Source: Okamejei kenojei
Taxonomy: Eukaryota
NCBI GenBank assembly: GCA_035221665.1
Contig: CM069154.1
Location: 5,890,001 to 5,954,000, forward strand
DNA: 64,000 bases
Direction: 5' to 3'
This document shows positions 29,233 to 64,000 of this stretch, one piece after another. Each line of letters opens with the position of its first letter. Within the stretch, counting starts at the first letter, position 1. The notes beneath the pieces are model-generated. The model ran no database searches. It was not told where the DNA came from and saw nothing but the letters and a program-made list of their open reading frames with translations. The position numbers and the translations under genes were made by a program.

Positions 29233-29508
29233 CTAAGAAACAACAGAGGCATAAATTGTCTCAGAGTTCTCTGGAGTCCCAGTAGAGTGGGGTTTCCGAA
29301 TGCCCTTTGGGCAGTTGCGATGAAAATTGACATCTGCATAGACAACAGCATTGTCAGTCACATGGTGCCTTGATCTCGACTTCCTTTGACAATTCACCAC
29401 TGCGTACGTGATTCCACCTTCATTGTTATCCAAATGGTCAGGTGCCCTGTTGTTTCCAAGTTGCTGCAGATTTGAATAAACGTGGTTCCCTTCCAACACT
29501 GCCATTTC
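29233..29508 (-). CDS. Gene B terminal exon with ITIMs (ITYAVV, VVYADV), ITSM (TIYASV) and a YSNL tyrosine
   Basis: ttacattttag| phase 0; ORF 29233-29505 ends in TAG; motifs fit (I/V/L/S)xYxx(L/V) and TxYxx(V/I). Confidence 0.9.
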   Translation of the reverse strand, partial: EMAVLEGNHVYSNLQQLGNNRAPDHLDNNEGGITYAVVNCQRKSRSRHHVTDNAVVYADVNFHRNCPKGIRKPHSTGTPENSETIYASVVS

Positions 29509-32500
29509 CTAAAATGTAACAAAATTCAATTTTACAACCTAATATATCTGATGGGTGCTCAACAGATGTCTATTGCAAAATAGGTCTCAAAGTGTTCAGT
29601 GTACAGAACAAGCCATTGCTGCTGTTTACAGCACAAAGATAGTGCAGCAATGTGGAGCAATGATAGAGTTGCTGCCTAACAGCGCCTACAACAGGTTAGT
29701 AGGTTAATTGGTTTGGCATAATAGCAAATTGCCCCTAGTGTGTGCAGGATAGTTTAGTGTGCGGGGGTCACTGGTCGGGGTGGACTCTGTGGGCCCAAGA
29801 TCCTGTTTCTGCGCTGGAGTGGACTGGTGTTGCTAAATGGCCTGTGTATACACACATAATTCAATATTATATATTCTTCATCACTCAGATAATTTATATT
29901 TCACGTTTTTACCTGGATGTCATTGTTCTCTTCACCGTGTGATGTATTGCAATTGGATTCTGGAAAATATGTTGTCAATAGGGCCATATCAGGAACGGGT
30001 TTAAACATCATTCATTCATATATTTCATTCATTTGTTCTATGTACCTTCTATATCTCTCATTTCCCTTTCCCCTGACTCTCAGTCTGAAGAAGGGTCTCG
30101 ATTCGAAAAGTCACCCATTCCTTTTCTGCAGAGATGCACCCTGAACCGCTGAATTGCTTGAGCATTTTGTGTTTATCTTCAGTATAAACCACCATCTGCA
30201 GTTCCTTCCAATACACTGAAACATCTACGTGTTGTTTCCACGACATTATATTTAGGAGAACCCGAAAAGTACTGCTGTATATTTGCATGAACGGAGCAAA
30301 AATCTGTCCTGTTGTTCTGGTTACTGTACATATTGTTCAGAATGGATCATATTCCCTCTGCTCTACCCATCCCTCCCGAAAGCTGCCTAAACCTACTTGA
30401 TCTCCTGGTTGCTCAACCCTTTAACTACCATTCTCATTCCCACACTAACATTATTGTCCTGGGCCTCCTCCGTTATCAGAGTGAGGCCCAGCGCAATTTG
30501 GAGGAACAGCACCTCATATTTCGCTTGGGCAATTACACCCCAGTGGTATGAATATTGACTTCTCTAGCTTCAAGTAGCCATTGCTTTCCCTCTCTCTCCA
30601 TCCCCTCCCCATTCCCAGCTCTTTGTCCAGTCTTACTGTCTCCGACTACATTGTATCTGTGTACTACCCACTCCCCTGACATCTGTATGAAAAGGGTCTT
30701 GACCCGAAACGTCACACATTCCTTCTCTCCAGAGATACTGCTTGTTCCGTTGAGTTACTCCAGCATTTTGTGTCTATCGTCCTAAACTTATCTGCTCCAG
30801 CAGGTTTTCATAAGTTCAGTAAGTGATAGGAGCAAAATTATGCTATTCGGCCCATCCATCTAATCCACAATTTATTCATGGCTGATCTATCTCTCCCTCC
30901 TTACCTCTTTCTCCTGCCTTCTCTCTACAATCCAGGACACCTGTACTAATCAAGAATCTATCTAGCCATCTATGCCTTAAAAATATCTATTGACGAACTC
31001 CATGGCATTCTGTGGCAAAACATTCCACAGATTCATCACCCTGTGACAAAATAAATTCTTCCTCATCGCCATCCTAAAGGAATGTCCTTTAAATCGGAGT
31101 TATGACCTCTGGCCCCAGACTGTCCCAGTAGTGGAAACATCCATTCTACATCCACTCTATCCAGGACTTTCACTATTTGATGTTTCAATGGGTTCCCCCC
31201 CTCTTTTCCCTCTTACCCTGTTGTAATAGATCTTGGATCTGAAATATTTACTGTTTTACTTTCCACTAATGCTCTCTGACTGAGAAAAGCTCAGTGAACT
31301 TTCACATTTTCATCGGCGGTGGAGATAGTTGGTAGCTTCAAGTTCATGGGTGTTGACATCTAGGATTACCTGTCCAGGCTAGACCTACCCTGCCTCAACT
31401 ACCTCCTCTGGCAGCTCCTGCCATATACCCATCGCCCTCTGTGTGAGGCAGGTATGTTGTACATTGTCTATGTCCCTGTGAGGCTGCAGGCGTGATCTTC
31501 ATTGTAACTGTACTTCATCATGCTTGTGCATGTGACAATAAACACGACTTAACCTGATTTGAAATACAACAGCTAATCACAGAAAGCATATTCTAACAAC
31601 TGAGAGGATGGGAGTATATATGTAAATCTTACTTCCACCTGGCCTCTTAGTTCTCACACATCTCTGCCATTTCACACTCAGACAGTTTCTGTACGGTGAT
31701 GTTAAAAGAACAGTTTATGTCACCGAGTCATCATGATAGCATCAAACATGATAGCATTATTGATCATTCATGCCTCCCTCCTACATTTTAATTCATTAAT
31801 GCTGGGCATTTGTTGATTACAACAGAATAAAAATATCTTGACATTCTGCAAGGAACTGAGACATGTATTGCGAAATTATTTAAGGGAAATCTGAAACTCA
31901 CCCTTGGATTTACGCTTTCGGTACCAAAGGAAGGCAATGATGAGAATCAGGACAAACACAGTGACACCAGACACAAATATGTAAGTGATCCTGTTGGACA
32001 TAGAATAGGGAAGGGTGAGATATGGCTCATCATTGATTCTTGGCCTTTAGTAAAGAACAAAAGTCAAGCATTCATATGGCACCTTTCATACATTTTTTGC
32101 AGTGTGCAACAAAGGAAATGAAGTGTAGAGTCGGTGGGTAATGCAGCAGCTAATCTGCTCACATTAAGATGACATTGACCAATGATCGTGAAACTGGTTG
32201 AAGATCAATTGCGTCCAAACATTAAGGAACAATGGATGGGAACCGTAACACTTTTATTGCAATGATTACTTTAGTTTAGTTCAGCTGAGTTTGGTTTAGT
32301 TTAGTTTATATTAGTTTAGTTTTTATTTGAGTATAACTTTCAAAATGTAAACCCTAACCCTAACCCTAACCCTAACCCTAATTCTATAAAAGATTTCAGG
32401 AGTTAATGGTCCCACGATTACTTAAATTATATAGTTATGCTTTTACTGAAAATAAATTACCAGAAACTTTAGCAGAATCTACAATTACGATTATACCAAA

Positions 32501-35500: not shown

Positions 35501-38500
35501 GTCACGTTCTAGGTGGAGAAACGTTCCTGCTGTTGGAGTGACTGACATTGAGACACTGACCAACTCTGCAAGGTGTTGCCATATGTGATATCAAAGGTGG
35601 TGTTTTAGACCAACATTCACTATGCATTTTCCTATCAGTACCACACCAGAACAGGTCATAGCAAGGCAAAGCAGCAATACTTGTGTTTGGCAACTTTACT
35701 CATCTCACACCATGGGATGAGGTTAGCAATGGAGAATACCATTGGTGAATACCTCAGGGAATGCCCTCTGAAGGGCAACAAATGGAGGAATCTGTTCTTA
35801 TCACCCAAGCATATACACAACACATTGAGATATAATCCAGTGCAATTTCCCTTCTGGTGAGTTAACTAATATCTGGTTTGCAAGTTATATATGTATTATT
35901 ATAGAATAAGGTCATAAGGAATACGAGTAGAATTAGGGAATTTGGCCCATCAAGTCTACTCCGCCATTCAATCATGGCTGATCTATCTCTCCCGCCTAAC
36001 CCCATTGTCCTGCCTTCTCCCCATAACCTCTAACACCCGTACTAATGAAGAATCTAGCTACTTATGCCTTAAAAATATCCACTGACTTGGCCTCCACAGA
36101 ATTCTGTGGCAAAGAATTCCATAGATTCACCACCCACAGACTAAAGGAATTTATCCTCATCTCCTTCATAAAAGAACATCTCATTCTGAGGCTAGAACCT
36201 CTAGTCCTAGAATCTCCCACCGGTGGAAACATCTTCTCCACATCCACTCTACCCAATTCTTTCACTATTCTGTATGTTTCAATGAGGTCCCCCATCATTC
36301 TTCTAAACTCTTGTTTAGAAGAATGTTTGAGAGATAAATTTATCTTTTAATGTCAGTCTTGAAATATGTACAAAGGCATTGGTTATGTTTCCTGATATTT
36401 GGGTTCATCGGATCCATAGAGAAACACAGTATGGAAACAGGCCATTTGGTCCTTTATGTCTGCGCTGACCATTAGCCACATTCACACAAATGCTGTGGGA
36501 AGAAGAGTGGTCTAGATAGTTGTGGGAGTCAGTAGGTTTATAATAGACATCAGTCGATAGTCTTTCTCCTCTGGTGAAGACAATGAGATCGAGAAAGGGG
36601 AGGGAGATGTTGGAGATGGTCCAAGTGCATTTGAGTGGCGGATGGAGAGCAGGAGACCATTCTCTCTGCAACCCTGCTGAATGGCTCAATTCTACTCCTA
36701 TTCCTTATAACATTATGACCTATACTTCCCTGGTTATCTCATTCTTTCCCATCCAAACCACCTCCTCCCCAATATCTTCCCCTTCAACCATAGGAAATGC
36801 AACATCTGTCCCTATACCTCCTCCCTTGACTCTGTCCAAGGACCTCAATTATCCTTTCGGGTTAGAGTTAATTTGAACCTCCTCCAACCTCATCTACTGT
36901 ATGAGGTGTGGACTCTTATACATCAGCAGGACCAAACGTTGACTGGGCGATCATTTCACTGAACATTTAGCTCAGTCCTCCTCTCACTATATGATCTCCC
37001 AGTTGCTAAACACTTTAACTCCCTCTCCCATTCCCGCACTGACCATTCTGATCTGGGCTTCCTCCATTGTCAGAGTGAGGCCAAATGCAAATTGGAGGAC
37101 CAGCACCTCATACTTCGCTTGGGCAGCTAACTGCACAGCAGTATAAATGTTGATATCTCTAACTTTAAATAACCCTTGCATCCCCTCTCTCTCTGTCTCT
37201 CCCCCACCCTAGTCGTTGTATGCATTTCACTGTTGTCTTGTAGTGTCATATTGTCTGTGCAAACCGTTTTCACCTAGTCCACAGTTAACAATGGATCTTT
37301 TCCTTGATCATTGTTACTTTTTTGCATATGTTTCATTCATTGTTTTATACCTTTCTATATCACCGTCGATATCGCTCTCGTTTCCCTTTCCCCTGACTCT
37401 CACTCTGAAGAAGGGTCTCAACCTGAAACGTCACTTATTCCATTTCTCCAGAGACGCTGACTGACCCGACGAGTTACTCCAGTTGTTTGTGTCTATATTC
37501 AGTTTAAACCAGCATCTGCTGTTCCTTCCTACACAATGAAAGGCAAAATATGCAGAACACACATAGACGGCACCTAAGTTCAGGGTCTTGGCATTGTGAG
37601 ACTGTGGTTCCACTGGTTGTGCCACTGTACATACAAATCAATACTCCAACTGGCCTTTAATGCCAGTGAATGGAAGATACAACTTTCTCTCAATTGAAGC
37701 AATCCCAATCAAAACACCAGTAATTAGTACATCATTCATTGGAAACAGAGTAGTTTACCTTGAAGATAGACAAAAGTGCTGGAGAAACTCAGCGGGTGCT
37801 GCAGCATCTATGGAGCGAAGGAAATAGGCAACATTTTGAGCCGAAACCCTTCTTCAGACCCACCATCAGTCTGAAGAGGGGTGTCAGCCCGAAACGTTGC
37901 CTATTTCCTTCGCTCCATCGATGCTGCCGCACCCGCTGAGTTTCTCCAGCATTTTTGTCTACCTTCGATTTTCCAGCATCTGCAGTTCATTCTTAAACAG
38001 TTTACCTTGACGTATACTTGGATCTTTTCGAAGTTTCACAAGAATATTCAAGTCCTGTTGGAACAAGGAAATAAAAATCATTTCACTGCTTTTCACTTGC
38101 AGTTGAACAAGAGAGCATGCTTGTCCGATGTAAGGAGTTTATAGGCAATGTTTCTTCAGTGTAATTTACAGCAAATGGGAGATGTTGTCATGATAAGCCG
38201 GAGCACTAGTTACAACTCAGGTCGGCAACAGTATGGCGGCGCAGTGGCACAGTGGTAGAGTTGCTGCCTTACAACGAATGCAGCCCGGGTTCGATCCTGA
38301 CCACGTATGGAGTTTTTACCTTCTCCCCATGACCTGCGTGGGGTTTCTCCGAGATCTTCGGTTTCCCCCCACACCCCAAAGACGTACAGGTTTGTAGGTT
38401 AAATGGCTTGGTAAATGTAAAAATTATCCCTAGTGAGTGTAGGATGGTTAATAATGTGCGGGGATCACTGGTCATCACCGACCCAGATGGCCGAAGGGCT

Positions 38501-41500
38501 TGTTTCCGCGCTGAATCTCTAAACTAAAGACGTGCAGGTTTGAAGGTTAATTGGCTTCTGTAAATTGTCCCTTAATTTAGAATTGCCCCTAATTGTAGAA
38601 TTGGTATACCGGTTAAAGGCAGCTGTTTCAACGCTGGATCTCTAAACTAAACTGGATAGATGGGGTTTTATTCCACACAGGAGAGGAACGAGGAAGCTAT
38701 TACAGGTATGCAATGCTATGAGGGACATAGATAGGGTACTTTGTGGAAAATCAGCATAGCAGATGTGCGTAGAAGTGGAGAACATTGGGTTGGGTTAGGG
38801 AGTAGAATATTCGGAGGGTATCTGAGCAAGAAATATTTTTAAACCTAGATGGTGGGGGCACTTGAATTGTCAAGTCTGAGAAGACTGTGGATGAGGGGCT
38901 GGTAAAAATGGGATAAGTATCAATGGTACTTAATGGTAACACAGTGTACCAAAGCTGATAGTGTCTAGGAGTTAACTGTGGCCACATCTATGGATAATTT
39001 CTGTTCCCTTCCCACATTTGAGCGTCGGTCATGTGGAGATGATGGAAAGTGAAAGTGCTTGGACTGATGTCACTGCAAATCTATTTTAAAGCTGTGCAAA
39101 CATAAGAGGAAGTTCTAGCCGGGAAGCTGGCCTACACCAGCACTGGGAAATCTATTTCTGGAGCTCAGCAACCAAGTATTGTCAAATGGGCCATAATTCC
39201 ATCATTTTAATCTCGATAAGTTATTAAATAAGTGCATGGATTTTAGGATGTCGGGGATTATGCGGAGAAGGCAGGAGAATGGGGTGAAGAGGGGATGATA
39301 GATCAGCCATGATTGAGTGTTCTATTTATGCTTCTATCACGTGATCTTATGAACCACCCCATCCCCAGTTCCCCTTCTTGTCCTCATTCCCTCCACTACT
39401 TACCAGTGCTGTTGATTTTCACCAGAAAGCTACAGGGAACGTCACTGCTGGAAATGGACACGTTGACCATTTCACTGGATTTTGATCCACGTTTATTTGA
39501 GGCTGTGCAATAATATTGATGGTGCTGGTGTTTGAAGGATTGACAATGTAGGTCTAGGGCATTGTTGTCTGAGATATCTGAATCCACAGATGGGGTCTTT
39601 TCATGCCAGGTGTAGCTAATGGGAAGGGAACCCCGGACCGACTCACAGGACACTGTCACTGAGCCCCCAAGACAGGAGACATTGGCTGGTGACAGAAATA
39701 CAAGCGCAGGAACAGACATGGGTTCTGTTGGAAAGGAGCAAACAGTCAGACACTGAGTGAACATCTGAAAATCAAACACTCGCCAATATCCACCATCTCT
39801 GTATCTTAGCCAAAGCCGGCAGGTTGGAATCTGACCCATCCATCTACATAGAAGTCATACAGTGTAGAAACAGGCCCTTCGGTCTAACTTGCCCGCACTG
39901 ACCAACACGCCCAATCTGCACTAGTTCCCCACCTGACCTTTCTTGGCCCTTAACCCTCTAAACTTATCCTATTCATGTACCTGTCCAAATTTTTCTTAAA
40001 TGTTGCAAGAGTACCTGCAATAACTACTTCCGTCGGCAGTTCGCTTCATCTACCTACCAACCTTAGTGTAAAAACGTTACTCCCCAGCCACTTGATAAAT
40101 TACTCCACCCTCATCTTAAATCTATGTCCTCTGGTTCTTGATTCCCCTGTGTATGCACAAATGCATTTATGAAGTAAATCGACAGGGACTCACTCCAGTA
40201 CAGATAAGGACAATGTCCCAGCTCAGATATTGCATTTCAAAGCGACAGCCAAATTGCCTGTCAGAAAGCTCCTTCTCCTCACAATCCATTTACAGATATG
40301 TACATCTCTGTGTCTCTCCATCCTCCCAGCAGCCAGAACAACCATGTCTGCCACTGTACCAGTGCACAGCAGTACCATCTCTATTTGTTTTGTATTTCCA
40401 GCATCTGCAGTATTTTTAATCTGAAACTCTGCCACAAATCTACAATACCAACATTCAAACACTTCATTAATGCAACATTATCACTATCAACAACTTTTTA
40501 ATTTCCTTGTATAAAATTGTTGATAGTGATACTGTTGCACTAATGAGACGTGTGAATGGCGGTATTGTAGAATTGTGTGTAGGGAGCGAATGGGAAAGTG
40601 GAATAACATAGAACTAGTGTGACCGGTGATCGCTAGTCGGTGTGAACTCATTGGGCCAAAGGATCCGTTTCCATGTTGCATTTGTAAACTACAACTAACT
40701 ATCCGGGTGAACCTTTTCTGTAACCTCTCCAAACCTCTCACATCTTTTGTTTTATAAAGCGGGGACCAGAACTGTGCACCAGACTCCCACCTAACAAATG
40801 TTTTGTGTGGATGCCAAAGTGGAGACATCAAGTCACTCGCTGAGAAACCTACCTTCAGATACTTGGAGATGTACTTTAAATGTTGGTTCGCCAGATGTAG
40901 TAATTCCACATCTGTACCATCCTGTATCTCCAGAGCAAAGATCCTCCACTGTCACAGTAAATATTCCTCGTGCCGGGTTATCTGTGATTGACACTCTTCC
41001 GCTCTGTCCATGTTTCCCATTTGTTTCCACTACATGTGTACACTGGCGACTTGTCCCAGGGCACCAGTATTTTGTGTCTGAGTGGTACACTGCTGCATAG
41101 TGACAATCGATTGTGATTGCTCTTCCCACAACCCCTCTTACTTCGCTCTCAGCCCACAGTGCACCTGAAACTGAAGGAAAAATCTTTCATAAATTGAAGA
41201 GCAAAATTTGCCTTTCACAAACATATACATTATAGTATACATCAATGTGTACATGGCAGTCTGCCCTATCATTTTCTTAACTGTGTTGAATTCTACCTAG
41301 ATTGCGATGAGAGACGGATACTGTACACCGTCCCTCACCAACTGCACAGGCCATTCCAAAGTGCTTCCAAGCCAATGTGGGTGTGAATGGTGAAGAATAA
41401 TGCATTGAACACGGAGCCTGGTGCAATTGGAAGGCGCTGTCTAGGGAGTCTTGGTGAGTTGCTGCAGTGCATTGTGCAGATGGTGCAAACTGCTGCTGCT

Positions 41501-44500
41501 CTGCATCAGTGGGGGAGGTTGAAGATGGGGTGTCTGTCAAGCGCGATTCTGGGTCATGACAGACCAAGCACAAGTGTTCAGCGAAACTGTGGTCTAGGCC
41601 AGTGCTTCTTAAACTGATGAATGGTTCAAAGGGTGAATGAAATTATTTTGGGGTGAATTTGTTAATTGATGTTTTTTGCTCATGTGACAAAATAAATTAT
41701 ATATACAATTATACACAAGGGAGAATAAGATGAAAATTACCAAAAAAAACATAAGAAAATTTAGTCGAAGGGTGAATGAAATTTTGTGCTAAATACACAA
41801 GGGTGAATGACACTGAAATATTTTAAAAAGAAGTGGCCTTGGCTGCGCTTGGTCTCGCCGATGTAAACCATTTACGCTCTCTTATGGACTTCCAATCAGA
41901 GCATCTCCACACCTACTGCGGGTTTCATTTAAAATTCTCTTTGACAAAAGTAAGGGTCATACTTGATGGAGTGACGGCCAAGCAGATTCACTTTAATTAT
42001 GTGAGATTACTGGAGTTCCAGTGATTCACGCAAATTAACAGTTAAAATCATGAACATTATCATGAAATTGTACATAATAATAATAATAAAAATATATTTT
42101 ATTGTCATTACACATAAGTGCAACGAGATTTGTTTTGCAACTCCATCCGATGTCATAACTTAAACGACTAATAAAATTTAGGTTTAGATACCCCGAGAAC
42201 AAGATTTGTGAAAAGAACATTAGAACAGTAAAACAGTCAAAACCAAAACAGACTAAAGTGCAGATGTGTCTGTGCGACGTGACCATCCAAGGGAGACAGT
42301 CCATGGGGGGGGGGGGGGGGGGTACTCAGCAGGACAGGTTCAGAGCCGCTATAGCTCTGGGAATGAAGCTGTTCCTGAGTCTGGAGGTGCGGGCATAGAA
42401 GGCCTTGTAGCGTCTGCCAGAAGGGAGTAGTTCGAACAGTCCATTACAAGGGTGAGAGGAATCTTTATGGATGCTGACGGAGTTCCTCAGGCACCGTGTG
42501 TGGTAGATGCCCTCCAAGGCTGGTAGCGGTGTCCCAACAATCTTTTGCGCTCTGTGGACGACGCGCTGAAGAGCTCTCCTCTCTGCCTCCGTGCAGCTGA
42601 GATACCACACAGAGATGCCATACGTTAGTATGCTCTCTGTCGTGCAGCGGTAGAAGGTCGTCAGCAGCTGTTGGGGCAGACCAGTCCGTTTCAATGTTCT
42701 TAGGAAGAACAGTTGTTGCTGTGCCTTTTTGACCAGCGCAGCAGTGTTGGTCGACCATGTGAGGTCCTCTGAGATTCGTGGTTATAAATGATCATGGATC
42801 CAAATAGAATACATTTGGTTGCTTTCTCTTTCTCAAAGTGACTGTGAGATCTTAAGTGGCAGCTAGAGAATCATTTTTAAAGCAGAAGGCAGTAACTTGA
42901 TGGAATGCACTCAATGCGTTGTGATAAGTGCAGATCTTTCTCTCCTTTCGAAGCTCAACACCTCCCAGGTGAAAGCAACAGGCAATTATTTGCCAGTTCC
43001 CCAAACACTCTCGCATTTTACACCATGAGCTCACGGTAGCTGTAATGATGCCGTCTGCAAATACCAAGAAACCCATGAACATCACCACAAGGAGATTAGC
43101 AGCAGGTTCAGGGACTCTAGAGGAATTGTGAAACAGTATTCCCATGGGAAAATAACACTCACCTGCATTGTTCATTTCTGTCACATAACTGCACGTTCCT
43201 GCTCCTTTGAAGACTTTCACGTTGACAATGTCACTAGATTTTGTCTCACCATAATTAGAGGCTGTGCAGTAATATTGACGGTGTTGACCTCTGAGGATTT
43301 CACAACTCAGATCCAGTTGATTGCCAGACGAGATCCTTGAACACCCATACTCTTTCTTCTCACACCATGTGTAATGGATGGGAAGGGATCCACGGACAGA
43401 CTCACAGGACACTGACACTGAGCCTCCGAGACGTGAGGCATTTGCTGGTGACAGATATCTGAGCACAGGAGCAGACACGGGTTCTGTGGGAATGGAGCAA
43501 ACATTCAGTCACTTGTATGAACAGTTCAAAACCAATCACATGCTAAATCTCAGCAGCCCTTTATCTCAGCCCGAACCGTCCGGTTGATATCTCAACGGCT
43601 CATCTACATCTCTGTGAGTGTGCGAAGCCCAGAAACTGAAGAAGGTTAGAGTTGTAGAGAAACGAAAGAGGCCCATGACCAAACATGCCACTGCGGTAAA
43701 TGACACCTTACTAATCCCCCCTCTTTAAATAGTTTCCATTACCTCTGTCCTCCACTTTCTCATCCCGCACATCATGGGAAAATGAACATGCTTCTCGTGA
43801 TTGATACATTTCTCTAAGTTCCTTGCTCAATCATTTCCACAGCAAGGAATAAAGTCTTAGTTTGTCCAATCGCTCTCTGCATCAATCGCATCCTGTCCAG
43901 GCAGCGTCGCCCTAAATCCTTTCTGGACGCTGTCCACCTCAAAGGCATTTTTCTTGGAGCTGAAGATCTAAAGCTGAACACAATTCCCAAAGTGCGGATT
44001 CAACATCTGCACGTCTGAAGCTTATTATCTCAAATTATGTTCTGAATGTTCTCACTGATGAAGACCAGCGTGCAAAAAACCCTATTCAATGCCTTGGAAT
44101 TTAAAGGCGAAAACTAATTACGATCGCTTTAAGATAGACACAAAATGCTGGAGTAACTCAGCGGAGCAGGCGGCATCTCTCAAGAGAAGGAATGGGTGAC
44201 GTTTCGGGTCGAGACACTTCTTCAGCCTGAGAGTCGTGGGACAGGGAGAGAGAGAAATGGAAGGGTAAGATGTGAAAACAAGTCATCAAAGGTGACAAAG
44301 TTAAAGGAAATTGTAGAATGAATCATTGTCGACTGAAGGGAAGGTGACAACGAGGCATACAATCAGTAAAATAGAATCAGGGTGACAGTGAAACTAAATG
44401 GAGAACTAGGATGGAGGCAGGATGGAAAGGAGTAAAGCAAGGGTTACTTGAAGTTCATTGTTTTAACCGTAGTGACAAGGCCAGCTGCTTTAAATACCTG

Positions 44501-48516: not shown

Positions 48517-48592
48517 AGTGACAAGGCCAGCACTTAGTCTGCCAGTCGCTCAGCTCTGAGCTCTCAGATACAACCGCATCTCTCAATTTAAC

Positions 48593-50237: not shown

Positions 50238-50337
50238 ACATAGAAACATAGAAACATAGAAATTAGGTGCAGGAGTAGGCCATTCAGCCCTTCGAGCCTG
50301 CACCGCCATTCAATATGATCATGGCTGATCATCCAAC

Positions 50338-53322
50338 TCAGTATCCCGTACCTGCCTTCTCTCCATACCCTCTGATCCCCTTAGCCACAAGGGCCACATC
50401 CAACTCACTCTTAAATATAGCCAATGAACTGGCCTCAACTACCCTCTGTGGCAGAGAGTTCCAGAGACTCACCACTCTCTGTGTGAAGAAAGTCTTTCTC
50501 ATCTCGGTCTTAAAGGATTTCCCCCTTATCCTTAAGCTGTGACCCCTTGTCCTGGACTTCCCCAACATCGGGAACAATCTTCCTGCATCTAGCCTGTCCA
50601 ACCCCTTAAGAATTTTGTAAGTTTCTATAAGATCCCCTCTTAATCTCCTAAAATTCCAGAGAGTATAAACCGAGCCCATCCAGTCTTTCTTCATAAGACA
50701 GTCCTGACATCCCAGGAATCAGTCTGGTGAACCTTCTCTGCACTCCCTCTATGGCAATAATGTCCTTCCTCAGATTTGGAGACCAAAACTGCACGCAATA
50801 CTCCAGGTGTGGTCTCACCAAGACCCTGTACAACTGAAGTAGAACCTCCCTGCTCCTGTACTCAAATCCTTTTGCTATGAAAGCTAACATACCATTCGCT
50901 TTTTTCACTGCCTGCTGCACCTGCATGCCTACTTTCAATGACTGGTGTACCATGACACCCAGGTCTCGCTGCATCTCCCCTTTTCCCAATCGGCCACCAT
51001 TTAAATAATAGTCCGCTTTCCTGTTTTTGCCACCAAAGTGGATAACCTCACATTTATCCACATTATACTGCATCTGCCAAACATTTGCCCACTCATCCAG
51101 CCTATCCAAGTCACCCTGCAGTCTCCTAGCATCCTCCTCACAGCGAACACTGCCCCCCAGCTTAGTGTCATCCGCAAACTTGGAGATATTGCCTTCAATT
51201 CCCTCATCCAGATCATTAATATATATTGTAAATAGCTGGGGTCCCAGCACTGAGCCCTGCGGTACCCCACTAGTTACTGCCTGCCATTGTGAAAAGGACC
51301 CGTTTACTCCTACTCTTTGCTTCCTGTTTGCCAGCCAGTTCTCTATCCACATCAATACTGAACCCCTAATACCGTATGCTTTAAGTTTGTATACTAATCT
51401 CTTATGTGGGACCTTGTCGAAAGCCTTCTGGAAGTCCAGATATACCACATCCACTGGTTCTCCCTTATCCACGCTACTAGTTACATCCTCGAAAAATTCC
51501 ACAAGATTCGTCAGACATGATTTACCTTTTGTAAATCCATGCTGACTTTGTCCAATGATTTTCACCACTTTCCAAATGTGCTGCTATCCCATCTTTAATA
51601 ACTGACTCTAGCAGTTTCCCCACGACCGATGTTAGACTAACTGGTCTGTAATTCCCCCATTTTCTCCCTCCCTCCCTTCTTAAAAAGAGGGGTTACATTT
51701 GCTACCCGCCAATCCTCAGGAACTACTCCAGAATCTAAAGAGTTTTGAAAGATTATCACTAATGCATCCACTATTTCCTGAGCTACTTCCTTAAGTACTC
51801 TGGGATGCAGCCTATCTGGCCCTGGGGATTTATCGGCCTTTTAATCTATTCAATTTACCCAGCAGCACTTCCCGACTGACCTGGATTTCACTCAATTCCT
51901 CCTTTGACCCACAGTCCCCTGCTATTTCAGGCAGATTATTTATGTCTTCCTTAGTGAAGACGGAACCAAAGTAGTTATTCAATTGGTCCGCCATATCCTT
52001 GTTCCCCATGATCAACTCACCTGTTTCTGACTGCAAGGGACCTACATTTTGTTTTAACTAACCTCTTTCTCTTCACATATCTATAAAAACTTTTGCAGTC
52101 AGCTTTTATGTTCCCTGCCAGTTTTCTTTCATAATCTATTTTTCCTTTCCTAATTAAGCCCTTTGTCCTCCTCTGCTGGTCTCTGAATTTCTCCCAGTCC
52201 TCTGGTATGCTGCTTTTTCTGGCTACTTTGTACGCATCATCCTTTGCTTTGATACTATCCCTGATTTCCCTTGTTATCCACGGATGCACTACCTTCCCTA
52301 ATTTATTCTTTTGCCAAACTGGGATGAACAATTTTTGTAGTTCATCCATGCAGTCTTTAAATGTCTTCCATTGTATATCCACCGTCAACCCTTTTAGAAT
52401 TAATTGCCAGTCAATCTTGGCCAATTCACGTCTCATACCCTCAAAGTTACCTTTCTTTAAGTTCAGAACCATTGTTTCTGAATTAACAATGTCACTCTCC
52501 ATCCTAATGTAGAACTCAACCATATTATGGTCACTCTTGCCGAAGGGGGCACGTACAACAAGACGGCTAATTACCCCTTCCTCATTACTCAAAACCCAGT
52601 CTAAAATAGCCTGCTCTCTCGTTGGTTCCTCTACATGTTAATTTAGATAACTATCCCGCATACATTCCAAAAAATCCTCTTCCTCAGCACCCCTGCCAAT
52701 TTGATTAACCCAATCTATATGTAGATTGAAGTCACCCATTATAACTGTTTTGCCTTTGTCACACGCATTTCTAATTTCCTGTTTGATACCATCCCCAACT
52801 TCTCTGCTACTGTTAGGTGGCCTGTACACAACACCCACCAGCGTTTTTCTGCCCCTTAGTGTTTTGTAGCTCTACCCATACCGATTCCACATCCTCCAAG
52901 CTAATGTCCTTCCTTTCCATTGCTTTAATCTCCTCTCTAACCAGCAACGCTACCTCACCTCCTTTTCCTTTCTCTCTATCCCTCCTGAATATTGAATATC
53001 CCTGGATGTTCAGCTCCCAGCCTACGTCACCCTGGAGCCATGTCTCCGTGATCCCAACTATATCATAATCATTAATATCTATCTGCACGTTCAACTCGTC
53101 CACCTTATTACGAATACTCCTTGCATTGAGACACAAAGCCTTCAGGCTTGTCTTTACAACGCATTTACCCCTTATACAATTTTGCTGAAAAGTGGCCCTT
53201 TTTGATTTTTGCCCTGGTTTTGTCTGCCTGCCACTTTTACCTTTCACCTTGCTACCTAATGCTTCTGCCGTCATTTTACACCCTCCTGCCTCTCTGCTCT
53301 TGTACCCATCCCCCTGCCACAT
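50338..53322 (-). pseudogene. CR1 ORF2 (AP endonuclease + RT) broken by several frameshifts and one stop
   Basis: CLNARSIRNK, VGITETWL, VYRPP, MGDFN, SDHN, QHGF, FADD spread across six consecutive ORF fragments. Confidence 0.92.
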
Positions 53323-54266
53323 TAGTTTAAATCCTCCCCGACAGCACTAGCAAACACTCCCCCAAGAACATTGGTTCCATTCCATTCCAGGTGCAAACCG
53401 TCCTGTTTGTACCGGTCCCACCTCCCCCAGAACTGGTCCCAGTGCCCTAAAAATTTGAATCCCTCCCCCTTGCACCACTTTTCAAGCCACGTATTCATTT
53501 GCATTATCCTCCTATTTCTACTCTGACTGGCCCGTGGTACTGGTAGTAATCCGGAGATTACTACCTTTGAGGTCCTACTTTTAAGTTTATCTCCTAGCTC
53601 CCTAAATACACCTTGTAGGACCTCATCCCTTTTTTTACCTATATCGTTGGTGCCAACATGCACCACGACAACTGGCTGTTCACCCTCCCCCTCCAGAATG
53701 TTCTGCAGCCGTTCAGTGACATCCCTGACCTTTGCACCAGGGAGGCAACATACCATCCTGGAGTCTCGTTTGCGGCCGCAGAAACGCCTATCTATTCCCC
53801 TGACAATTGAATCCCCTATTACTATTGCCCTTCCCCTCTTTTTTCCCCCCTCATGTGCTGCAGAGCCACCCATGGTGCCATGAACCTGGCTGCTGCTGCA
53901 TTCCCCTGATGAGCCATCTCCCTCAACAGTATCCAAAATGGTATACCTGTTTAGGAGGGAGATGACCGCAGGGGACTCCTGCACTACCTGCCTACTGCTT
54001 TGCTGGCTATTGGCCACCCGTTCCCTTCTTGTCCTACCTTTTGCCTGCGGTGTGACCAACTCACTGTACGTGCTATCCACGACTTTCTCCGCATCGTGGA
54101 TGCTCCAGTATGAATCCAGCCGCAGTTCCAATCGTTCAATGCGGTCTGCCAGGAGCTGCAGCTGGACACACTTCCTGCAAACGTAGTCACCAGGGACACC
54201 GACCATCTCCCTGATCTCCCACATGTTGCAGGCTGAACAAACCATGGGGCCAATCTCTACTGCCAT
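53322..54266 (-). CDS. CR1 ORF1: zinc finger/coiled coil plus SGNH/GDSL esterase domain
   Basis: CSACNMW..CRKC; IVIGDSIVR, VVHVGTND, DGLHL. Confidence 0.92.
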   Translation of the reverse strand: MAVEIGPMVCSACNMWEIREMVGVPGDYVCRKCVQLQLLADRIERLELRLDSYWSIHDAEKVVDSTYSELVTPQAKGRTRRERVANSQQSSRQVVQESPAVISLLNRYTILDTVEGDGSSGECSSSQVHGTMGGSAAHEGGKKRGRAIVIGDSIVRGIDRRFCGRKRDSRMVCCLPGAKVRDVTERLQNILEGEGEQPVVVVHVGTNDIGKKRDEVLQGVFRELGDKLKSRTSKVVISGLLPVPRASQSRNRRIMQMNTWLEKWCKGEGFKFLGHWDQFWGRWDRYKQDGLHLEWNGTNVLGGVFASAVGEDLN

Positions 54267-55623
54267 ACCTTACTCCCAAATTACTAAAAAAAACACAAAA
54301 AACATATCCTTTAAAACTTTACTACTAAATACTGAATCCCTAACTCCCAGAATCCCTCACTCCCAGAAGGCAGAAATGTAAAATAGTAAACCCGGGGTTG
54401 CACCCAATCAGCTGCTTCCTCGGGTCCTCTTCCACCAATCAGCGGCTTCCTCAAAAAAAAACCCACTTCTCCAAATGGAACGTTATGGATTTGGGTAAGC
54501 CTCTGAAAAAGCAAGCCCCGCGCTCGATTTTTAACCTTACCGGTCGGGTGTCGCTCCTCCCCCTCCTTCACTTCCAACGGCTCCTGTGGGCCTCTGAAAA
54601 ACAAGCCCCGCACTCGATTTTTAACCTTACCGGTCGGGTGTCGCTCCTCCCCCTCCTTCACTTCCTCCAACGGCTCCTGTGGGCCTCAGCTATTTCCTGT
54701 TCACCAAAAACACTGCAGAGAGGAACCGAAGATGCAGCAAAACAATTTAATTCTGTCTTAATTCGCCATTGACCCATGTCTTCTGCTAACACTGCTCAGC
54801 AAACAGTGTTACAGCGAACTGCTCGCAAGATGCGGTTCAGATGTACGAATCCACACACCCTTGTATCAGCAGCGTGAGCAAAGTGTCAGCACTGCAGAAC
54901 AATTCAGTGTAAAGAAAGAAATGACTGTTTGAACATATTAGATGAAAGTACATTCCAAGTCAGCACCCACCATTAAAACAACATTGGCATCGACCAGAAA
55001 TGTCACCCATTCTTTCTATCCATTGAAATCTATCTATCTGTGGCATCTCAGACCGTCTATCTCTCACTATCTGTGAGGCACTTTGGGATGCCTTGCAGTG
55101 GGGAAAAGCTCCAATTTAAGATCATTCCTCCCATTGGACCATTAACAAACTCAATTTGAACGGGCCGGGCAGCATCAGTGTGGCCACAGAATTTGCAAGT
55201 ATCTCTGGCTATTCAGCACCCCTCAGATGTTCATGATCTGGGGGTTTGTGAGTTCAAAGCAGCCTCTGGTCTCATTTCCTCGTCTCCCCGCTTACTGTGT
55301 GGAGAATACCCAAAGTAATCCTTGAGTCTTTCCGAACTTTATGGTGGTTACTCCGTTATTGCAGGTCACCATTTTTTATTATCAAACAACATCCTTAACA
55401 GTTCTTTCATGAGCGGGGTGATAGTGACAATTCAGACTGAGGAAAGCAACACAATGTATTTGCAGTTTCACACCCCGTTCTTTGCAAGCAGCAACTCAAC
55501 CATTGTGTCCTGCACAAGATTAGACCTTCCACTAGTTTAGTTTAGAGATACATCGCGGAAACAGGCCCTTCGGCCCACCAAGTCCACACTGACCAGCGAT
55601 CGCCGCATATTAACACTACCCTA

Positions 55624-57125: not shown

Positions 57126-57577
57126 GCCACCCTACACACACTGGGGACAACTTATATTTATAGCAAGCCAATTAACCTACGTACCTGTACGTCTTTGGAG
57201 TGTGGGAGGAAACCGAAGATCTCGAAGAAAATCCACGCGGTCATGGGGAGAACATACAAACTCCGTACAGACAACTCCAGTAGTCTAGATCGAACCCGGG
57301 TCTCCGGCGCTTCAAGCGCTGTAAGGCAGCAACTCTACCGTTGCTCCACCATTGCCATTATTTATAGTCATCTAACACCTTTGGACGGTGGACAAAATGA
57401 ATAGCTTGTTGCAGCATTAAAATGTTTATCAATATTACGGTACTCAAAAGACGCGAAAGTGGGATGCTATAGAACCAGTGTGAAAGGGTTAATTGCTGAT
57501 TGAAGTGGACTCGGTGGGCTAAATGGTCTGTATCCATCCTGTATCTTTCAATCACTTAATCAAAAAAAATAGTTTTA

Positions 57578-58268
57578 CAAAATGCTGGAGTAACTCAGCG
57601 GGACAGGCATCATCCCTGGATGAAAGAAATAGGTGACGTTTCTGGTCAAGACCGTTCTTCAGACTGAAATCAGGGGAGAGGGGATACTTGGAATCGGATC
57701 CGTGGTTTGTAAATGGGACAAAGGGATGGCGATGAAGGAAAAAATGCAGAATAGATCATTGTTAGTTGGGAGAAGGTAACAACGAAGCAATTAAAGATAA
57801 AATGTAGTCGGAGACTGTGAGACTGCTCGGGGAACTGGGAAGGAAGGGGGGGGGGGGGGTGGAATGAGATGGAATGCAAGGATTACTTGGAGTGAGAAGT
57901 CCATTTTCACACCGCGGGGGTGTGAGAGCTGTCCAAGCAAAATATGAGGTGCTCTTCCTCCAATTTGCGCGGGAACTCAATCTGACAATGGAGGATGCCC
58001 AGGGCAGAAATGTCAGTGGGACTGGGAGGGGCAGTTAAAGTGTTTAGCGACTGAGATATCAGTTGGGGGTGGGCTGAGTGGAGGTGTTTAGCGAAACGAT
58101 CGCCGAGAAGCGAGGACAAGCGCAGGCTCGGCGATCGTTTCGCTGAACGCCGCTGCTCAGTCTGCATACCCCTACCTGATCTATCCGCAGATGCCGCCTG
58201 TCACCTGTTACCCCAGCAATGTATGTCTATCTTCAGTTTAAACCAGCATCTGCAGTTCCTTCCTACCT
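57578..58268. mobile_element. Penelope relic with inverted arms
   Basis: KLEEEHLIFCL remnant; inverted repeat around 58088-58146. Confidence 0.75.
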
Positions 58269-58541
58269 AAATATTAGTTGCATATCGGAAATGGAATCTG
58301 CTTTTGATGGATGTGCAAAGCGCGTCAGCCAGCATCTGTTGACAGAAAAATAAGGCTAATAGTCAGAACAATGTTGATGCATAATTTTGTTCTGATGGGA
58401 TAGCATGGCCTGAAAGATTAATTGATTGCCTTTCCTAAACGCAACTAACGTTTGGCAACAGGAGGATTATCCAGCAGTCTGATTGCAGTCTGTTGTGCAT
58501 CACTAAAGTTGCAGTCTATACAAAACAAATTAGACAAACCA

Positions 58542-58564
58542 TTTATTGACAACAATCATTTATT
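58542..58564 (-). terminator. Two AATAAA polyadenylation signals ~200 nt after the gene C stop
   Basis: tttatt on + strand at 58542-58547 and 58559-58564. Confidence 0.5.
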
Positions 58565-58765
58565 AAGAAGCATTATGTTGCATTATTATTCATTAACCAG
58601 TGAAAAATTTTTTTTCCAGAAAGTTGAAAGCATCTAATATAGTTTAACAGAGTATTAGAGTCTGGAGCAGCAAAAACCACGCAGAGGTTAAAACAATAGT
58701 TCGAAGCTGACGAAAGAATCCTTGGAAGAGGTGACAAAAATTAAGGTGGTGCAAGCTGGGTGTCT

Positions 58766-58813
58766 TCATTGTAAGTCGTGGGTCGAGTGGCGAAGTTCTG
58801 ATTCATCGCGTCT
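58766..58813 (-). CDS. Gene C terminal coding exon (15 aa, no tyrosine)
   Basis: attatcttttgcag| phase 0, RRDESELRHSTHDLQ-TGA. Confidence 0.65.
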   Translation of the reverse strand, partial: RRDESELRHSTHDLQ

Positions 58814-61800
58814 CTGCAAAAGATAATGTGAAGTCATCAGTCTCATTTGACCCGACCGCTCCCAACACAATGCTATCTGGAAGATGGACCCCAACAAATC
58901 CACACAGGGCACTGAAATCCACTCTGCACACGTGCAACCTGGCAAAACCTCGTGATATCATCTGCATTGAGATTTGGTTTAACTTCAGGATATGAAACCA
59001 TGCATGGTTTTTGTTTCTATTAATGGACAGGGTATTTGAAAGCATTAATGGAAACCGTTTGGATACATTCGGCGATGAAATGTGATTGCTTTGGTCAGGG
59101 GTGTTGAATCTATGGATTTCATTCCCACAGGAGGCTGTGGAGGCCAAGTGAATTCACACTGGAGATGCTGCCTGTCTCACTGAGTTACTCCAGCATTTTT
59201 GTATGTATCCAAATCAATTGATATTTTTAAGGGGGAGATTTTGATATTCTTGATAAATAAGGATGTCAATGGTTATGGGGAGAAGGCAGGAGAATGGGAT
59301 CGAGAGGGAAGGATAGATCAGCCATGATTGGGGGCGGATTAGATATGATGGGCTGAATGGCCTAATTCTGCTCCTATCATTTATGACCACGATGACAATA
59401 AAACCTACCTTAGAGCCTCTTGTGAACACCGCAGTTGAGATACTCCAGATCACAAGCAGGAGAAAGAGCAGCCAGCGCCCCACTCTCCATGAGATGTAAC
59501 TGGGCAGAGGGCAAGAGATACAGAATCAATGGGAGGAAATTAGACGGTTTATCTTTGAAGCATTTACCTGTTATTTGCTTCATAATCTTGGTGAAGTGGA
59601 GCGGGGCGAAGCAGCAGAGTAAATGGAGATCATCTTGGAGAAAGAATGGGTGTTAGACGTGAGGGGGGGTCGGGGGTTGGGGTGGGGGGGGGGGGGGACA
59701 ACTTATGATCACCAATTATTGACCTCATTTCTGGGGCATGGCTACAAGACTGGGTATGAGCGACTACGCAGTTAAATGGATTCGGAGAAGACCGAGAAAT
59801 AACTCTTGAGATGGAGCAGTGAATCAAGTGAATACAGAGTAGATAGACACAAAATGTTGGAGAAACAGCGGGAGAGGCAGTATCTCTGGAGAGAATGGAG
59901 GAAGATTGCAACCTTCACGTGGTCCGCCCTGTTTCGACTAGTGCAATCAACTCGACGTGCACAAATGGAAGATCAATTAGAACAAGTTGTCCAACAACTT
60001 TAGGCTGTGCACGCCACACGAAAGAAGAAGAAGAAGAAGACTGGGAATCACGGGAGAGGGAAAATGGGGATGTGGAAGGATACAAAGAACAGTGTAATAC
60101 CCTAGAAGAATGAAAATCCAGCTGCAAGGAAGAATATGGATAGACAGGAATAATAAAAATGGATCAATTCTAATGATAGAAGGGAGGTGGGGAATAAATA
60201 TGGAAACGGATGAGGCCAATAAATGAAATAAATTAAAAATGATAATGCATAATCTCACACTGGATACTTCTTGGATTAATGCGGTAGGTGTGTGCATGGA
60301 GGAAATGTGTTCGAAAAATCGGTTAAAGGCTCGCTCATAACGTGGTTTTGATGAACATTCTTATTTCCTAACGCAAGCGTAACGCAAGAGTGTGATAGGA
60401 AGTCAGATCTATTTCAATTGTAATAAGATAAATAACAAAGTGTTCACACTTTCATGACTATATTATGATTGAATATTTAATGGTTTCAAGTTTCAACGAG
60501 TAAAATAGCGTCAGTTAACTCATTTTGCTGTATTCGGTCTGATTCAAGACTAGTTTGTCACATTCTGCGCCAGTGATTTTAGGGTGTTTAACCCCATCAG
60601 TTGCAAGGTGTTGCCACACGTGATATCAAGGGGGGTGTCTTCGCCCATAATTCACAATGCATTTTCCTATCAGCACCACACCAGAGCAAGTCACAGCAAA
60701 GCTAAACTGCAACACTTGGGTTTGGCAACTATGTTCATCTCACAGCATGGGATGAGATTAGTGATGGAGGTCATGGTGAATACCGCAGGGAGCACTCTCT
60801 AAAAAGCAGCAAATGGGGGAACATGTTCTTATCATCCAAGCATGTGCACACCACAATGACATGTAAACCCAGTGCGATTCCCCTTCTGATGAGTTAACTA
60901 ATAACTGGTTTGCACGTAATATTTATTTTATTAAAGAATATTTAAAAGATAAATTTATATTTGGTGTCAGGCTTGAAACATGTACAACAATTGGTATGCT
61001 TCCTACTATTTGGGTTAATTGGATCAAAGACCTGTAGAGAAACACAGTAGAGAAATAGGGCACACAAAAGGCTGGAGAAACTCAGCGGGTGCAGCAGCAT
61101 CTAAGGAGCGAAGGAGATAGGCGACGTTTCGGGTCGAGACCCTTCTTCAGACTGGTCAGGGATCAGGGAAACGAGAGATATAGACGGTGATGGGGAGAAA
61201 TTCAATGTTCAAGCCCAGAGGATGCAGACTCCCCAAGCGGAATATGAGGTGCTGTTCTTCCAACTTGCGGTGTTGCTCACTCTGGCCGTGGAGGAGGCCC
61301 AGGACGGAGAGGGCGGATATGGAATGGGAGGGGGAGTTGAAGTGCTGAGCCACCGGGAGGTCGGCTTGGTTATTGCGGACCGAGCGGAGGTGTTCGGCGA
61401 AACGATTGCCAAGCCTCCGCTTGGTCTGACCGATATAGATCATCTGGCATCTGGAGCAGCGGATGCAGTAGATGAGGTTGGAGGAGGTGCAGGTGAACCT
61501 CTGTCGGACCTGGAAGGACTGCTTGGGTCCCTGAAAGGAGTGGAGGGGGGAGGTGAAGGGACAAGTGTAGCATTTCTTGCGGTTGCCCGGGGAAGGGGTA
61601 GAGCGGGAGGGAAGGGAAGAATTGACAAGGGAGTTGCAGAGGGAGCGGTCTTTGCGGAAGGCAGACGGCGGGGGGAGATGGCAAGATGTGGCGAGTGGAG
61701 GGGTCACGTTGGAGGTGGCGAAACTGGCGGAGGACTATGTGTTGTATTTGCCGGCTGGTGGGGTGAAAGGTGAGGACCAGGGGGACTTTGCCCTGTTTGC

Positions 61801-62854
61801 GAGTGGGGGAATGGGGAGAGTGGGCAGTGTTGCGGGGTATGGAGGAGACCCTGGTACGAGCCTCATCAATAGTGGGGGAGAGGAATCCCCGTTCTCTGAA
61901 GAATGAGGCCATTTGTGATGACCTGGTGTGGAACACCTCATCCTGGGAGCAGATGCGGCGTAGGCGGAGGAATTGGGAATAGGGGATGGAGTCCTTACAG
62001 GAAGCAGGGTGGGAGGAAGAGTAGTCCAGGTAGCTGTGGGAGTCAGTTGGTTTGTAGTGGATGTAGATCAGGAGTGTATCACCTGCAATAGAGATGGTGA
62101 GGTCAAGGAATGGTAGGGAAATGTCGGAAATGGTCCAAGTGTATTTGAGTGCCGGATGGAAGTTGGTGGTGAAATGGATGAAGTCGGTCAGTTGTGCGTG
62201 GGTGCAGGAGGTGACACCAAAGCAGTCGTCGCTGTAACAGAGGTAGAGGTCGGGGATGGGTCCCTGGTACGCCGAGAACAAGTATAGTTCGACGTACCCA
62301 ATAAAAAGGCAAGCGTAGCTGGGGCCCATGCGTGTGCCCATAGCTACGCCTTGTGTTTGGAAATAGGGCATTTGGCCGTTTCAGACAAATGCATTCACAT
62401 GATTCCTGTGTCAATCCTATCTTTATTTTCCCTACTTTCACATCAACTACCACTACCGTCCAACACCCTCCCTCCCCGCCCCACCCCACCCATTCTTCAC
62501 AGATTCAGCCGCTCTCCTGTACACACGGGCAGCTTACAACTGGCATGTGTTTGGGAGCTGGAAGGAAACTGGAGAATTTAAATGAAACCAACACAATTAA
62601 AGGCTAATCATACAGACCACACATAGACAGCAGTACATGTCGTGGCGTTGTGAGGCTGAGGCTGTGCCACTGTGCCTCAGGTCAATACTCTCATGCATTT
62701 AATGCTAGTGAAAGGAAGGCACAACTTTCTCCCAATTAAAGCATTCCCAATCAAAACTCCAGCAATTAGTACATTGTAACTTTAATTGGAAACAGAGTGG
62801 TTTACCTTGCAGAGTAATTGGATGTTATCGAATTTTCACAAGAATATTCATGAC
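58766..62854 (-). CDS. Gene C 3' part: activating-type receptor (hinge, TM with Arg, short tail); Ig exons lie right of the window
   Basis: Three exons with phases 1-2, 2-0, 0-stop joined in frame: GHEYSCENSITSNYSA-SYISWRVGRWLLFLLLVIWSISTAVFTRGSK-RRDESELRHSTHDLQ*. Confidence 0.8.
59409..59499 (-). CDS. Gene C transmembrane exon with Arg at the N-terminal side of the helix
   Basis: ctcttgccctctgcccag|...AAG|gtaggt, 91 nt, phase 2-0. Confidence 0.82.
59901..60040 (+). mobile_element. Short Vingi/Ingi-like retro-insertion with (GAA)n tail
   Basis: ...gcacgccacacgaaagaagaagaag end, inside a Penelope fragment. Confidence 0.45.
61058..62355 (-). mobile_element. Penelope-like element: RT C-terminus, GIY-YIG endonuclease and terminal repeat
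   Basis: GVAMGTRMGPSYACLF, YKPTDSHSYLDY, NLIYCIRCSRCQMIYIGQTKRRLGNRFAEH, GLN. Confidence 0.93.
61123..61150 (-). ncRNA. Minimal type-I hammerhead ribozyme motif in the Penelope terminal repeat
   Basis: CUGAAGA-A-GGGUC-UC-GACCC-GAAAC-GUC: core boxes, 5-bp stem II, palindromic ACGU stem III; stem I weak. Confidence 0.65.
62806..62854 (-). CDS. Gene C hinge exon
   Basis: 49 nt, same acceptor and donor as 38006-38054, conserved EYSCE. Confidence 0.82.
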
Positions 62855-64000
62855 CTGTTGGAACAAGGAAATTAAAGTCAAGTTTCACTGCTTTTCACTT
62901 GCAGTTGAACAAGTAGGTATGATTTTCCGATGTAAGGAGTTGATAGGCTTAACAGACAGGGTAATGGTTCTTCCGTGTGATTTGCAGCAAATGGGAGATG
63001 TTATCAAAACAAGCAGGCGTGCTGGTAAAAAACTCTGGCGCCAGGTGTAGACGGCACGGTGGCGCAGCGGTAGAGTTGCTGCCTTACAGCGCCAGAGGCA
63101 AGGGTTCGATCCTGACTACGGATGCTGTCTGTACGGAATTTGTACCTCCTCCTTGTGACCGCGTGGGTTTTCTCCAAGCTCTCCAGTTTCCCCGCATTCT
63201 GAAGTCGTGCAAGTTGGTTGGTTAATTGGCTTCTGTAAATTGTCCCCACTGAACTAGTGTACTGGTGATTACTGGACGTTGTGTACTCAGTGGGCCGAAG
63301 AGCCTGCTTCCACGATGCATCCATAAACTAATCAAAAGGGTGAAATTTCACTTGAGAGGGGTATTGCTTGGGATGGAACATTACACTGATGGGGGGGGGG
63401 GGGGGGGGGCTGGATAGGGGTTTTATAAAATTCCATGCAGGACAAGTGAGGAAGGGGGAACCTATTACAGGTGTGCAAAATTGTGAGCAGCATAGATAGG
63501 GTATTTTTAGAACATATTGCATGACATATAGTATTGATAGTACTGAATGGTCAATATTAACACAGTGGACCAAATCTAATACCATCGTCAAGGAGATAAC
63601 TGTTGCCACATTTACAATAATATCTGATCCCTTCCCATATTTGAGTGATGGTCTTGTGGAGATGATGGGAAGTGAAAGTGCTTGGACTGATGTCACTGCA
63701 AACCTAGTTTAAAGCTGTGTAAACATAAGAGGAAGTTCTAGCCGGGAAGCTGGCCTACACCAGCACTGGGAAATCTATTTCTGGAGCCCAGCAACCACAT
63801 ATTGACCAATGGGCAATAATTCCATCATTTTAATCTTGATAAGTTAATTAAATAACGTGCATGGATTTCAGGGTGTTGGGGTTATGGGGAGAAGGCAGCA
63901 GAATGGGGTGAAGAGGGGAAGATAGATCAGCCATGATTGAATGGTTTATTTCTACTTCTATCACTTGTGATCCTATGAACCACCCCACCCCCACTTCCCC

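Follow-up and report, generated by a model that had tools for sequence, protein, structure and literature searches.

A 64,000-nt stretch of the genome of the skate Okamejei kenojei (GenBank assembly GCA_035221665.1, contig CM069154.1, forward-strand positions 5,890,001 to 5,954,000) is referred to here as the window, and all positions are given in its own numbering. It is vertebrate DNA rich in transposons, with immunoglobulin (Ig) receptor exons on the minus strand that belong to three tandem genes, A, B and C. As judged from protein similarity, genes B and C are a new locus of the known modular domain immune-type receptor (MDIR) family, and both receptor types already have named counterparts, MDIR3 for gene B and MDIR5 for gene C. 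By their encoded motifs, B carries an inhibitory-type and C an activating-type signalling module; the two genes are tandem neighbours, and their paralogy stops between the hinge exon and the transmembrane (TM) exon. We consider it rather likely that they are same-strand inhibitory and activating members of the family, an MDIR3-type B and an MDIR5-type C, the latter with a predicted dependence on an adaptor that carries immunoreceptor tyrosine-based activation motifs (ITAMs). The coordinates of the features are collected in Table 1.

Gene B is intact. When the split codons were carried across the exons by a local script, its nine exons gave a single open frame of 594 codons, with AG acceptors throughout and a GT donor at each internal exon. 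The exons encode a leader, four Ig domains in the order V-C2-V-C2, a 49-nt hinge, an uncharged TM segment, a 47-nt cytoplasmic exon and a tail, each Ig domain being one phase-1 exon. The 47-nt exon was located by tblastn with a relative from Rhinoraja and then confirmed against MDIR3; it is needed for an in-frame tail because the tail exon begins in phase 0 after a TM exon that ends in phase 1. A gene model that joins the TM exon directly to the tail exon was rejected, since it yields a frameshift and a 23-residue tyrosine-free tail without immunoreceptor tyrosine-based inhibitory motifs (ITIMs). Gene C is cut off by the window end at 64000. Its three last exons are visible, and the local script found them in frame and bordered by AG/GT sites. 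Beyond its stop codon, AATAAA signals are present at 58564 and 58547. Extrapolating the alignment with gene B past the window end leaves 29 intron bases missing, which places the predicted C2 donor of gene C about 30 bp beyond 64000. The original prediction, which was made from the letters of the window alone, had located the uncharged TM segment of gene B and its tail motifs ITYAVV, VVYADV and TIYASV at the right sites, but mentioned neither the 47-nt exon nor the upstream motif HVYSNL. For gene C it had described a 49-nt hinge, a distinct TM segment and a tyrosine-free tail, and all of these are present on the minus strand at or near where it had put them. Its estimate for the C2 donor of gene C, about 30 bp past 64000, agrees with the extrapolation.

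The family assignment was obtained from similarity searches, all of which were run exon by exon and not with a joined spliced model. Among solved structures in the PDB, the V exons of gene B matched best to pIgR (1.9e-51 summed) and CD300f/CLM-1 (1.3e-17), and its C2 exons to FcRL5 (1.6e-42 summed). Relatives were gathered with XP_078277138.1, a “pIgR-like” protein of Rhinoraja longicauda and the closest long relative, as the query. There were 87 proteins returned, nearly all of them from sharks, rays and a chimaera. They include two proteins of Rostroraja eglanteria named “Modular domain immune-type receptor 3” and “MDIR5”, while elasmobranch relatives go under the names “pIgR-like”, “FcRL5” or “CMRF35-like” at NCBI. 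Of the retrieved proteins, the one most like the window is a “pIgR-like” protein of Leucoraja erinacea, with 94% identity on the second V exon, and none was an exact match. A search of representatives with the tail of gene B gave five matches, three of which were low-complexity noise.

MDIR3 is 88% identical to gene B in the hinge, 82% in the TM exon, 93% in the 47-nt exon and 82% in the tail, and 72-87% identical in the Ig exons. MDIR5 shares 30 of the 31 residues of the TM exon of gene C (97%) and 69% of its tail, which ends on the same residue. The sequences of both proteins continue across the exon joins predicted for B and C, and the junctions 31902>29959>29508 (gene B) and 62806>59499>58813 (gene C) are indirectly supported because the MDIR proteins read straight through them. 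Skate MDIRs have been described as multigenic activating and inhibitory families related to CD300, TREM, FCAR and pIgR (PMC3031540), and MDIR3 of the clearnose skate, Rostroraja (Raja) eglanteria, is from Cannon et al. (2006, Immunogenetics 58:362, as cited in PMC3031540). Besides the similarity of B and C to named members, the window shows other traits of the family: gene B has a modular ectodomain assembled from distinct Ig subfamilies (pIgR/CD300-like and FcR-like), and the tandem genes form a multigene group in which both signalling types occur.

The relationship between B and C was measured by self-BLAST of the window, which gave collinear matches (Table 1). The paralogy spans the intron after the C2 exon and the hinge exon and reaches into the next intron, and the two hinge exons, both of 49 nt, are preceded by 58 aligned bases that are nearly identical. 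It ends between the hinge and the TM exon; no similarity between B and C was found at the TM and tail exons. Relics of the other cassette were sought by tblastn; gene B showed no arginine-bearing TM (R-TM) exon, and the sequence downstream of gene C was without ITIM exons. Copies of a dispersed repeat some 190 bp long, probably a short interspersed nuclear element, lie at 63052-63240 and at more than 10 other sites on both strands (e.g. 12761-12946, 25101-25286, 26636-26753 and 57156-57350), including introns of B and C. Around 63052-63240 the repeat inflates the apparent similarity of the B and C introns.

The same break is found in the named proteins. In the clearnose skate, MDIR3 and MDIR5 share 81% identity along 463 residues, a part that covers V-C2-V-C2 and reaches halfway into the hinge. 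Beyond it they diverge completely, and their break at the hinge/TM border is the one seen between B and C in the window. The Ig exons of gene C lie beyond 64000, and the likeness of the B and C ectodomains is gauged by two proxies, the 86.7% identity of the introns beside the C2 exons and the 81% identity of MDIR3 and MDIR5.

The two cassettes downstream of this break carry opposite types of signalling module. In the tail of gene B, ITYAVV and VVYADV fit the pattern [SIVL]xYxx[IVL], and TIYASV fits TxYxx[VI]; gene B thus has the cytoplasmic ITIMs that one partner of a paired receptor carries, and the motifs are kept from skate to shark. The four tyrosine motifs align in the tails of Rhinoraja (first tyrosine lost), Hemitrygon and the bamboo shark Chiloscyllium, and a partial Mustelus protein retains the first two. 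ITIM-type tails were present in 34 of 99 collected proteins. A six-frame scan of the window gave 12 stop-free segments with at least two ITIM-type motifs, which makes the motif count alone weak evidence, and the case rests on the cross-species conservation.

Gene C has the sequence features of an activating partner, a conserved TM arginine and a 15-residue tyrosine-free tail. Its TM cassette, W-x-x-x-R-W, was sought among the 99 collected proteins with a relaxed pattern that does not require the arginine. There were 34 matches in 33 proteins, from skates, stingrays, mantas, sawfish, an electric ray and several shark orders. The arginine is present in all 34, and the residue preceding it varies (G, I, L or V). 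In sharks the arginine lies inside the helix, because the hydrophobic residues V-I or V-L precede it there. CD89 binds FcRγ by means of an arginine close to the upper end of its TM domain, and NKp46 and NKp30 use ζ/γ likewise; DAP12-type partners use a central lysine (PMC13107469, a 2026 review). The invariance of the arginine supports adaptor coupling, and gene C probably couples to an adaptor of the FcRγ/ζ-like kind.

Two public gene models touch on this cassette. The C-terminus of an XP model of the sawfish Pristis pectinata, aligned with 59499-59416, is 64% identical to the TM exon of gene C in another frame; this model probably reads the TM exon out of frame, which suggests that the R-TM cassette is under-annotated. 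A “TRIM69-like” model of Rhinoraja longicauda (760 aa) combines TRIM/RING Pfam domains with an MDIR-type V domain and the R-TM cassette at its end, and this gene model is probably a fusion.

The original prediction had suspected the MDIR family, had claimed that the hinge and introns of B and C are paralogous, and had read the two genes as paired inhibitory and activating receptors that bind similar ligands. Comparison with the named MDIR proteins bears out the suspicion, with B matching MDIR3 and C matching MDIR5, and the paralogy is real and collinear. What stands of the paired reading are the opposite module types, the tandem arrangement, the MDIR3/MDIR5 pattern and the invariant arginine, but the family itself is not new.

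A scheme for the origin and working of such a pair can be proposed. A tandem duplication would have given rise to B and C, the part from the ectodomain to the hinge being kept similar or homogenised while a different TM/tail cassette came to lie downstream of the hinge-TM intron. Upon ligand engagement, the motifs in the tail of gene B (two canonical ITIMs, one resembling an immunoreceptor tyrosine-based switch motif, and one ITIM-like) would be phosphorylated and would recruit SH2 phosphatases. The product of gene C would most likely need a dimeric ITAM adaptor with aspartates in its TM segment, of the FcRγ/ζ-like kind, to reach the surface and signal. A wider proposal is that the W-x-x-x-R-W cassette is an elasmobranch-wide FcRγ/ζ docking module older than the split between sharks and rays, which would make MDIR5-type receptors activating and the MDIR3/MDIR5-type genes a true adjacent pair. 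On the sequences compared here, our judgement of this proposal is evenly balanced.

Several points weigh against B and C as a pair of opposite signalling outcome. As only 17 hydrophobic residues follow the arginine of gene C, it could sit at the interface and not in the membrane. MDIR5 itself, in the 2006 MDIR paper, is reportedly among the forms without characteristic activating or inhibitory motifs. The window does not reach the leader, V and C2 exons of gene C, and the integrity of this gene and the likeness of its ectodomain to that of B are deduced only from the paralogous introns and from MDIR5. No hinge-TM-tail joints of gene C were found among the rows listed for four read runs (X1-X4), which were compared with 58500-64000 (5501 letters) and are probably low-coverage DNA or repeat-rich data, not clear RNA-seq of the species. 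The contigs of these runs over the interval were almost entirely repeats. Still, a 219-nt X1 contig fits 58629-58813 with three mismatches, its fit ends exactly at the predicted acceptor 58813, some low depth is also seen in the bins of the TM and hinge exons of gene C, and unique intron bins have zero depth; together this is no more than a hint of gene C transcription.

If the arginine were juxtamembrane and merely set the position or topology of the helix, no adaptor would be bound, and gene C would be a non-signalling or decoy receptor, a silent competitor of the inhibitory B. The shortness of the hydrophobic run, a second basic residue three positions upstream of the arginine, the lack of a motif in the tail and the reported placing of MDIR5 outside the activating forms speak for this. 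Against it speak the retention of the arginine in every cassette match from sharks and rays, next to flanking residues that vary, the V-I or V-L residues that place the shark arginine within the helix, and a position that fits the FcRγ/ζ contact rule (PMC13107469). We regard a decoy as unlikely. A minor but serious possibility is that B and C are mere neighbours in a large, shuffled multigene cluster, with different ectodomains and ligands, and thus not a functional pair despite their opposite modules. The family is modular: in rays the same R-TM cassette follows ectodomains of V alone, of V-C2-V or of greater length, and two or three V-C2 cassettes occur in the relatives of gene B from Rhinoraja and Leucoraja. 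The ectodomain of gene C, moreover, falls outside the window. However, the identity of the introns just below the C2 exons suggests a recent duplication or conversion that included the C2 exon, and MDIR5, the closest named match of gene C, is V-C2-V-C2 and close to MDIR3 over that whole part. Very improbable, in our estimate, is a dead or truncated gene C whose upstream exons are lost or broken and whose 3' exons alone look intact. Such a copy would agree with the position of the upstream exons outside the window, with a Penelope-like insertion in the hinge-TM intron and with the want of clear spliced support in the reads, but not with three consecutive exons with intact AG/GT sites and an open frame, a TM exon nearly the same as that of MDIR5, poly(A) signals after the stop, and a unique contig of low depth over the last exon that extends no further than its acceptor, beside unique intron bins of zero depth. 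The tandem inhibitory/activating reading of B and C remains the favoured one.

Table 1. Features of genes B and C, matches between the two genes in the self-BLAST of the window, and the transposon in the spacer between them
Feature	Position	Strand	Evidence or remarks
Gene B exon 1, leader (MDKTMWIPILL at start)	48468..48516	-	GT donor, phase 1 at end; 100% match to leaders of Leucoraja and Rostroraja relatives
Gene B exon 2, V1, pIgR/CD300-type V-set Ig domain	47071..47385	-	Pfam V-set E 8.6e-12; frame; AG/GT
Gene B exon 3, C2a, FcRL-like Ig domain	43163..43483	-	Pfam Ig_3 / Ig_C17orf99; homologues; frame
Gene B exon 4, V2, pIgR/CD300-type V-set, four Cys (C...KYWC...C...YRC)	40853..41170	-	Pfam V-set E 1.9e-13
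Gene B exon 5, C2b, FcRL-like Ig domain	39404..39724	-	Pfam Ig_3/Ig_2; PDB FcRL5; frame
Gene B exon 6, 49-nt hinge (GLEYSCETSKR...)	38006..38054	-	88-100% to MDIR3 and Leucoraja relative
Gene B exon 7, uncharged TM, then basic stop-transfer stretch YRKRKSK	31902..31990	-	82% to MDIR3
Gene B exon 8, 47-nt cytoplasmic exon (ESNCNTSHGEENNDIQ)	29913..29959	-	Restores frame; 93% to MDIR3 residues 596-610
Gene B exon 9, tail with HVYSNL, ITYAVV, VVYADV, TIYASV and stop codon	29233..29508	-	Motifs align with skate, stingray and shark proteins
Gene C intron directly downstream of the C2 exon beyond the window	63530..64000	-	86.7% identical to gene B intron 38916-39374 (self-BLAST, E 1e-158)
Gene C hinge exon, 49 nt (HEYSCENSITSNYSA)	62806..62854	-	Paralogous to gene B hinge; 13/15 residues as in MDIR5 hinge
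Gene C TM exon (WRVGRW, 17 hydrophobic residues, then TRGSK)	59409..59499	-	97% to MDIR5 residues 456-486
Gene C last exon, 15 Tyr-free codons, stop 58768-58766, 3' untranslated region	58540..58813 (lower bound approximate)	-	Frame; MDIR5 match; X1 contig
Self-BLAST match, C to B	62800-63240 to 38000-38416		75% identity
Self-BLAST match, C to B	62588-62813 to 37528-37766		76% identity
Self-BLAST match, C to B	60602-60940 to 35567-35908		81% identity
Long interspersed nuclear element (esterase-type ORF1, endonuclease, reverse transcriptase)	50648..54266	-	Fills much of the spacer between gene C 3' end and gene B leader

The spacer between the 3' end of gene C and the leader of gene B is about 10 kb long, and no other gene was seen in it. 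In the hinge-TM intron of gene C, two overlapping open reading frames (ORFs) lie at 61159-62371 on the minus strand, one of them with a GIY-YIG domain (E 1.6e-4), which suggests a Penelope-like element, and copies related to it occur at 45178-45729 and 57795-58107. Gene A, a third family member, lies downstream of B on the minus strand. It has a leader at 24573-24538 (MWIPILLIYSLP), a pIgR/CD300-type V exon at 13936-13607 and an uncharged TM exon at 4873-4783 (IIWLSIAGALLVVIVAGLL). Neither a C2 nor an ITIM exon of gene A was found within the window, so its tail may lie before position 1. The 10.6-kb intron between its leader and V exon contains a DIRS-like retroelement (15574-20912, minus strand), whose ORFs encode a reverse transcriptase of 670 aa, a protein of 343 aa without a Pfam match, and one with the N-terminal SAM-like domain of tyrosine recombinases.

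The locus is not a new kind of system. What it adds is that MDIR3 and MDIR5, skate receptor types defined from cDNA, now stand side by side in a genome, and that the switch between the brake and the accelerator module is located to the hinge-TM intron. The genomic adjacency of B and C, the place at which the modules switch and the invariance of the arginine cassette from shark to ray may be new. The invariant arginine cassette also offers a concrete candidate, open to testing, for one of the most ancient paired Ig receptor systems that couple to an adaptor, and if it does dock FcRγ/ζ, the pair would be built on a chimera of pIgR/CD300-type V and FcRL-type C2 domains without a mammalian counterpart. 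In addition, the annotation of relatives now labelled pIgR-like, FcRL5 or CMRF35-like could be corrected.

Of the known receptors, MDIR3 is closest to gene B, with the same ITYAVV, VVYADV and xIYASV motifs and the same V and C2 domain types; it comes from another skate species and has five domains (V-V-C2-V-C2) compared to the V-C2-V-C2 of gene B. The likeness of MDIR5 to gene C, whose TM exon has a single change among 31 residues (K to R), was established on the last three exons of gene C. Mammalian CD300 (CMRF35-like) receptors such as CD300a and CD300c share the V subtype of gene B with its extra C-C' disulfide. They possess one V domain and lack FcRL-like C2 domains, whereas gene B has four Ig domains, and we thus see in CD300/CMRF35 a resemblance without demonstrated orthology and do not assign gene B to that family. 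Activating CD300 members carry a TM lysine or glutamate and are not known to use an N-terminal arginine. As in the window, ITIM members and members with a charged TM segment are encoded in one cluster in the CD300 family (PMC2803305, PMC12447643). Gene B is not a pIgR either, as pIgR has V-type domains only and a transcytosis tail, whereas gene B has FcRL5-like C2 domains and an ITIM tail. FcRL proteins in turn have no V domain, and the alternating V-C2 chimera is the hallmark of MDIRs. PIR-A, LILRA and GPVI are, beside CD89, NKp46 and NKp30, further FcRγ/ζ-coupled receptors with an arginine at the top of the TM domain. Although gene C has no TM sequence homology to these receptors and its adaptor link is a predicted one, it resembles them in having an arginine 3-4 residues into the TM helix, followed by a short, signal-less tail.

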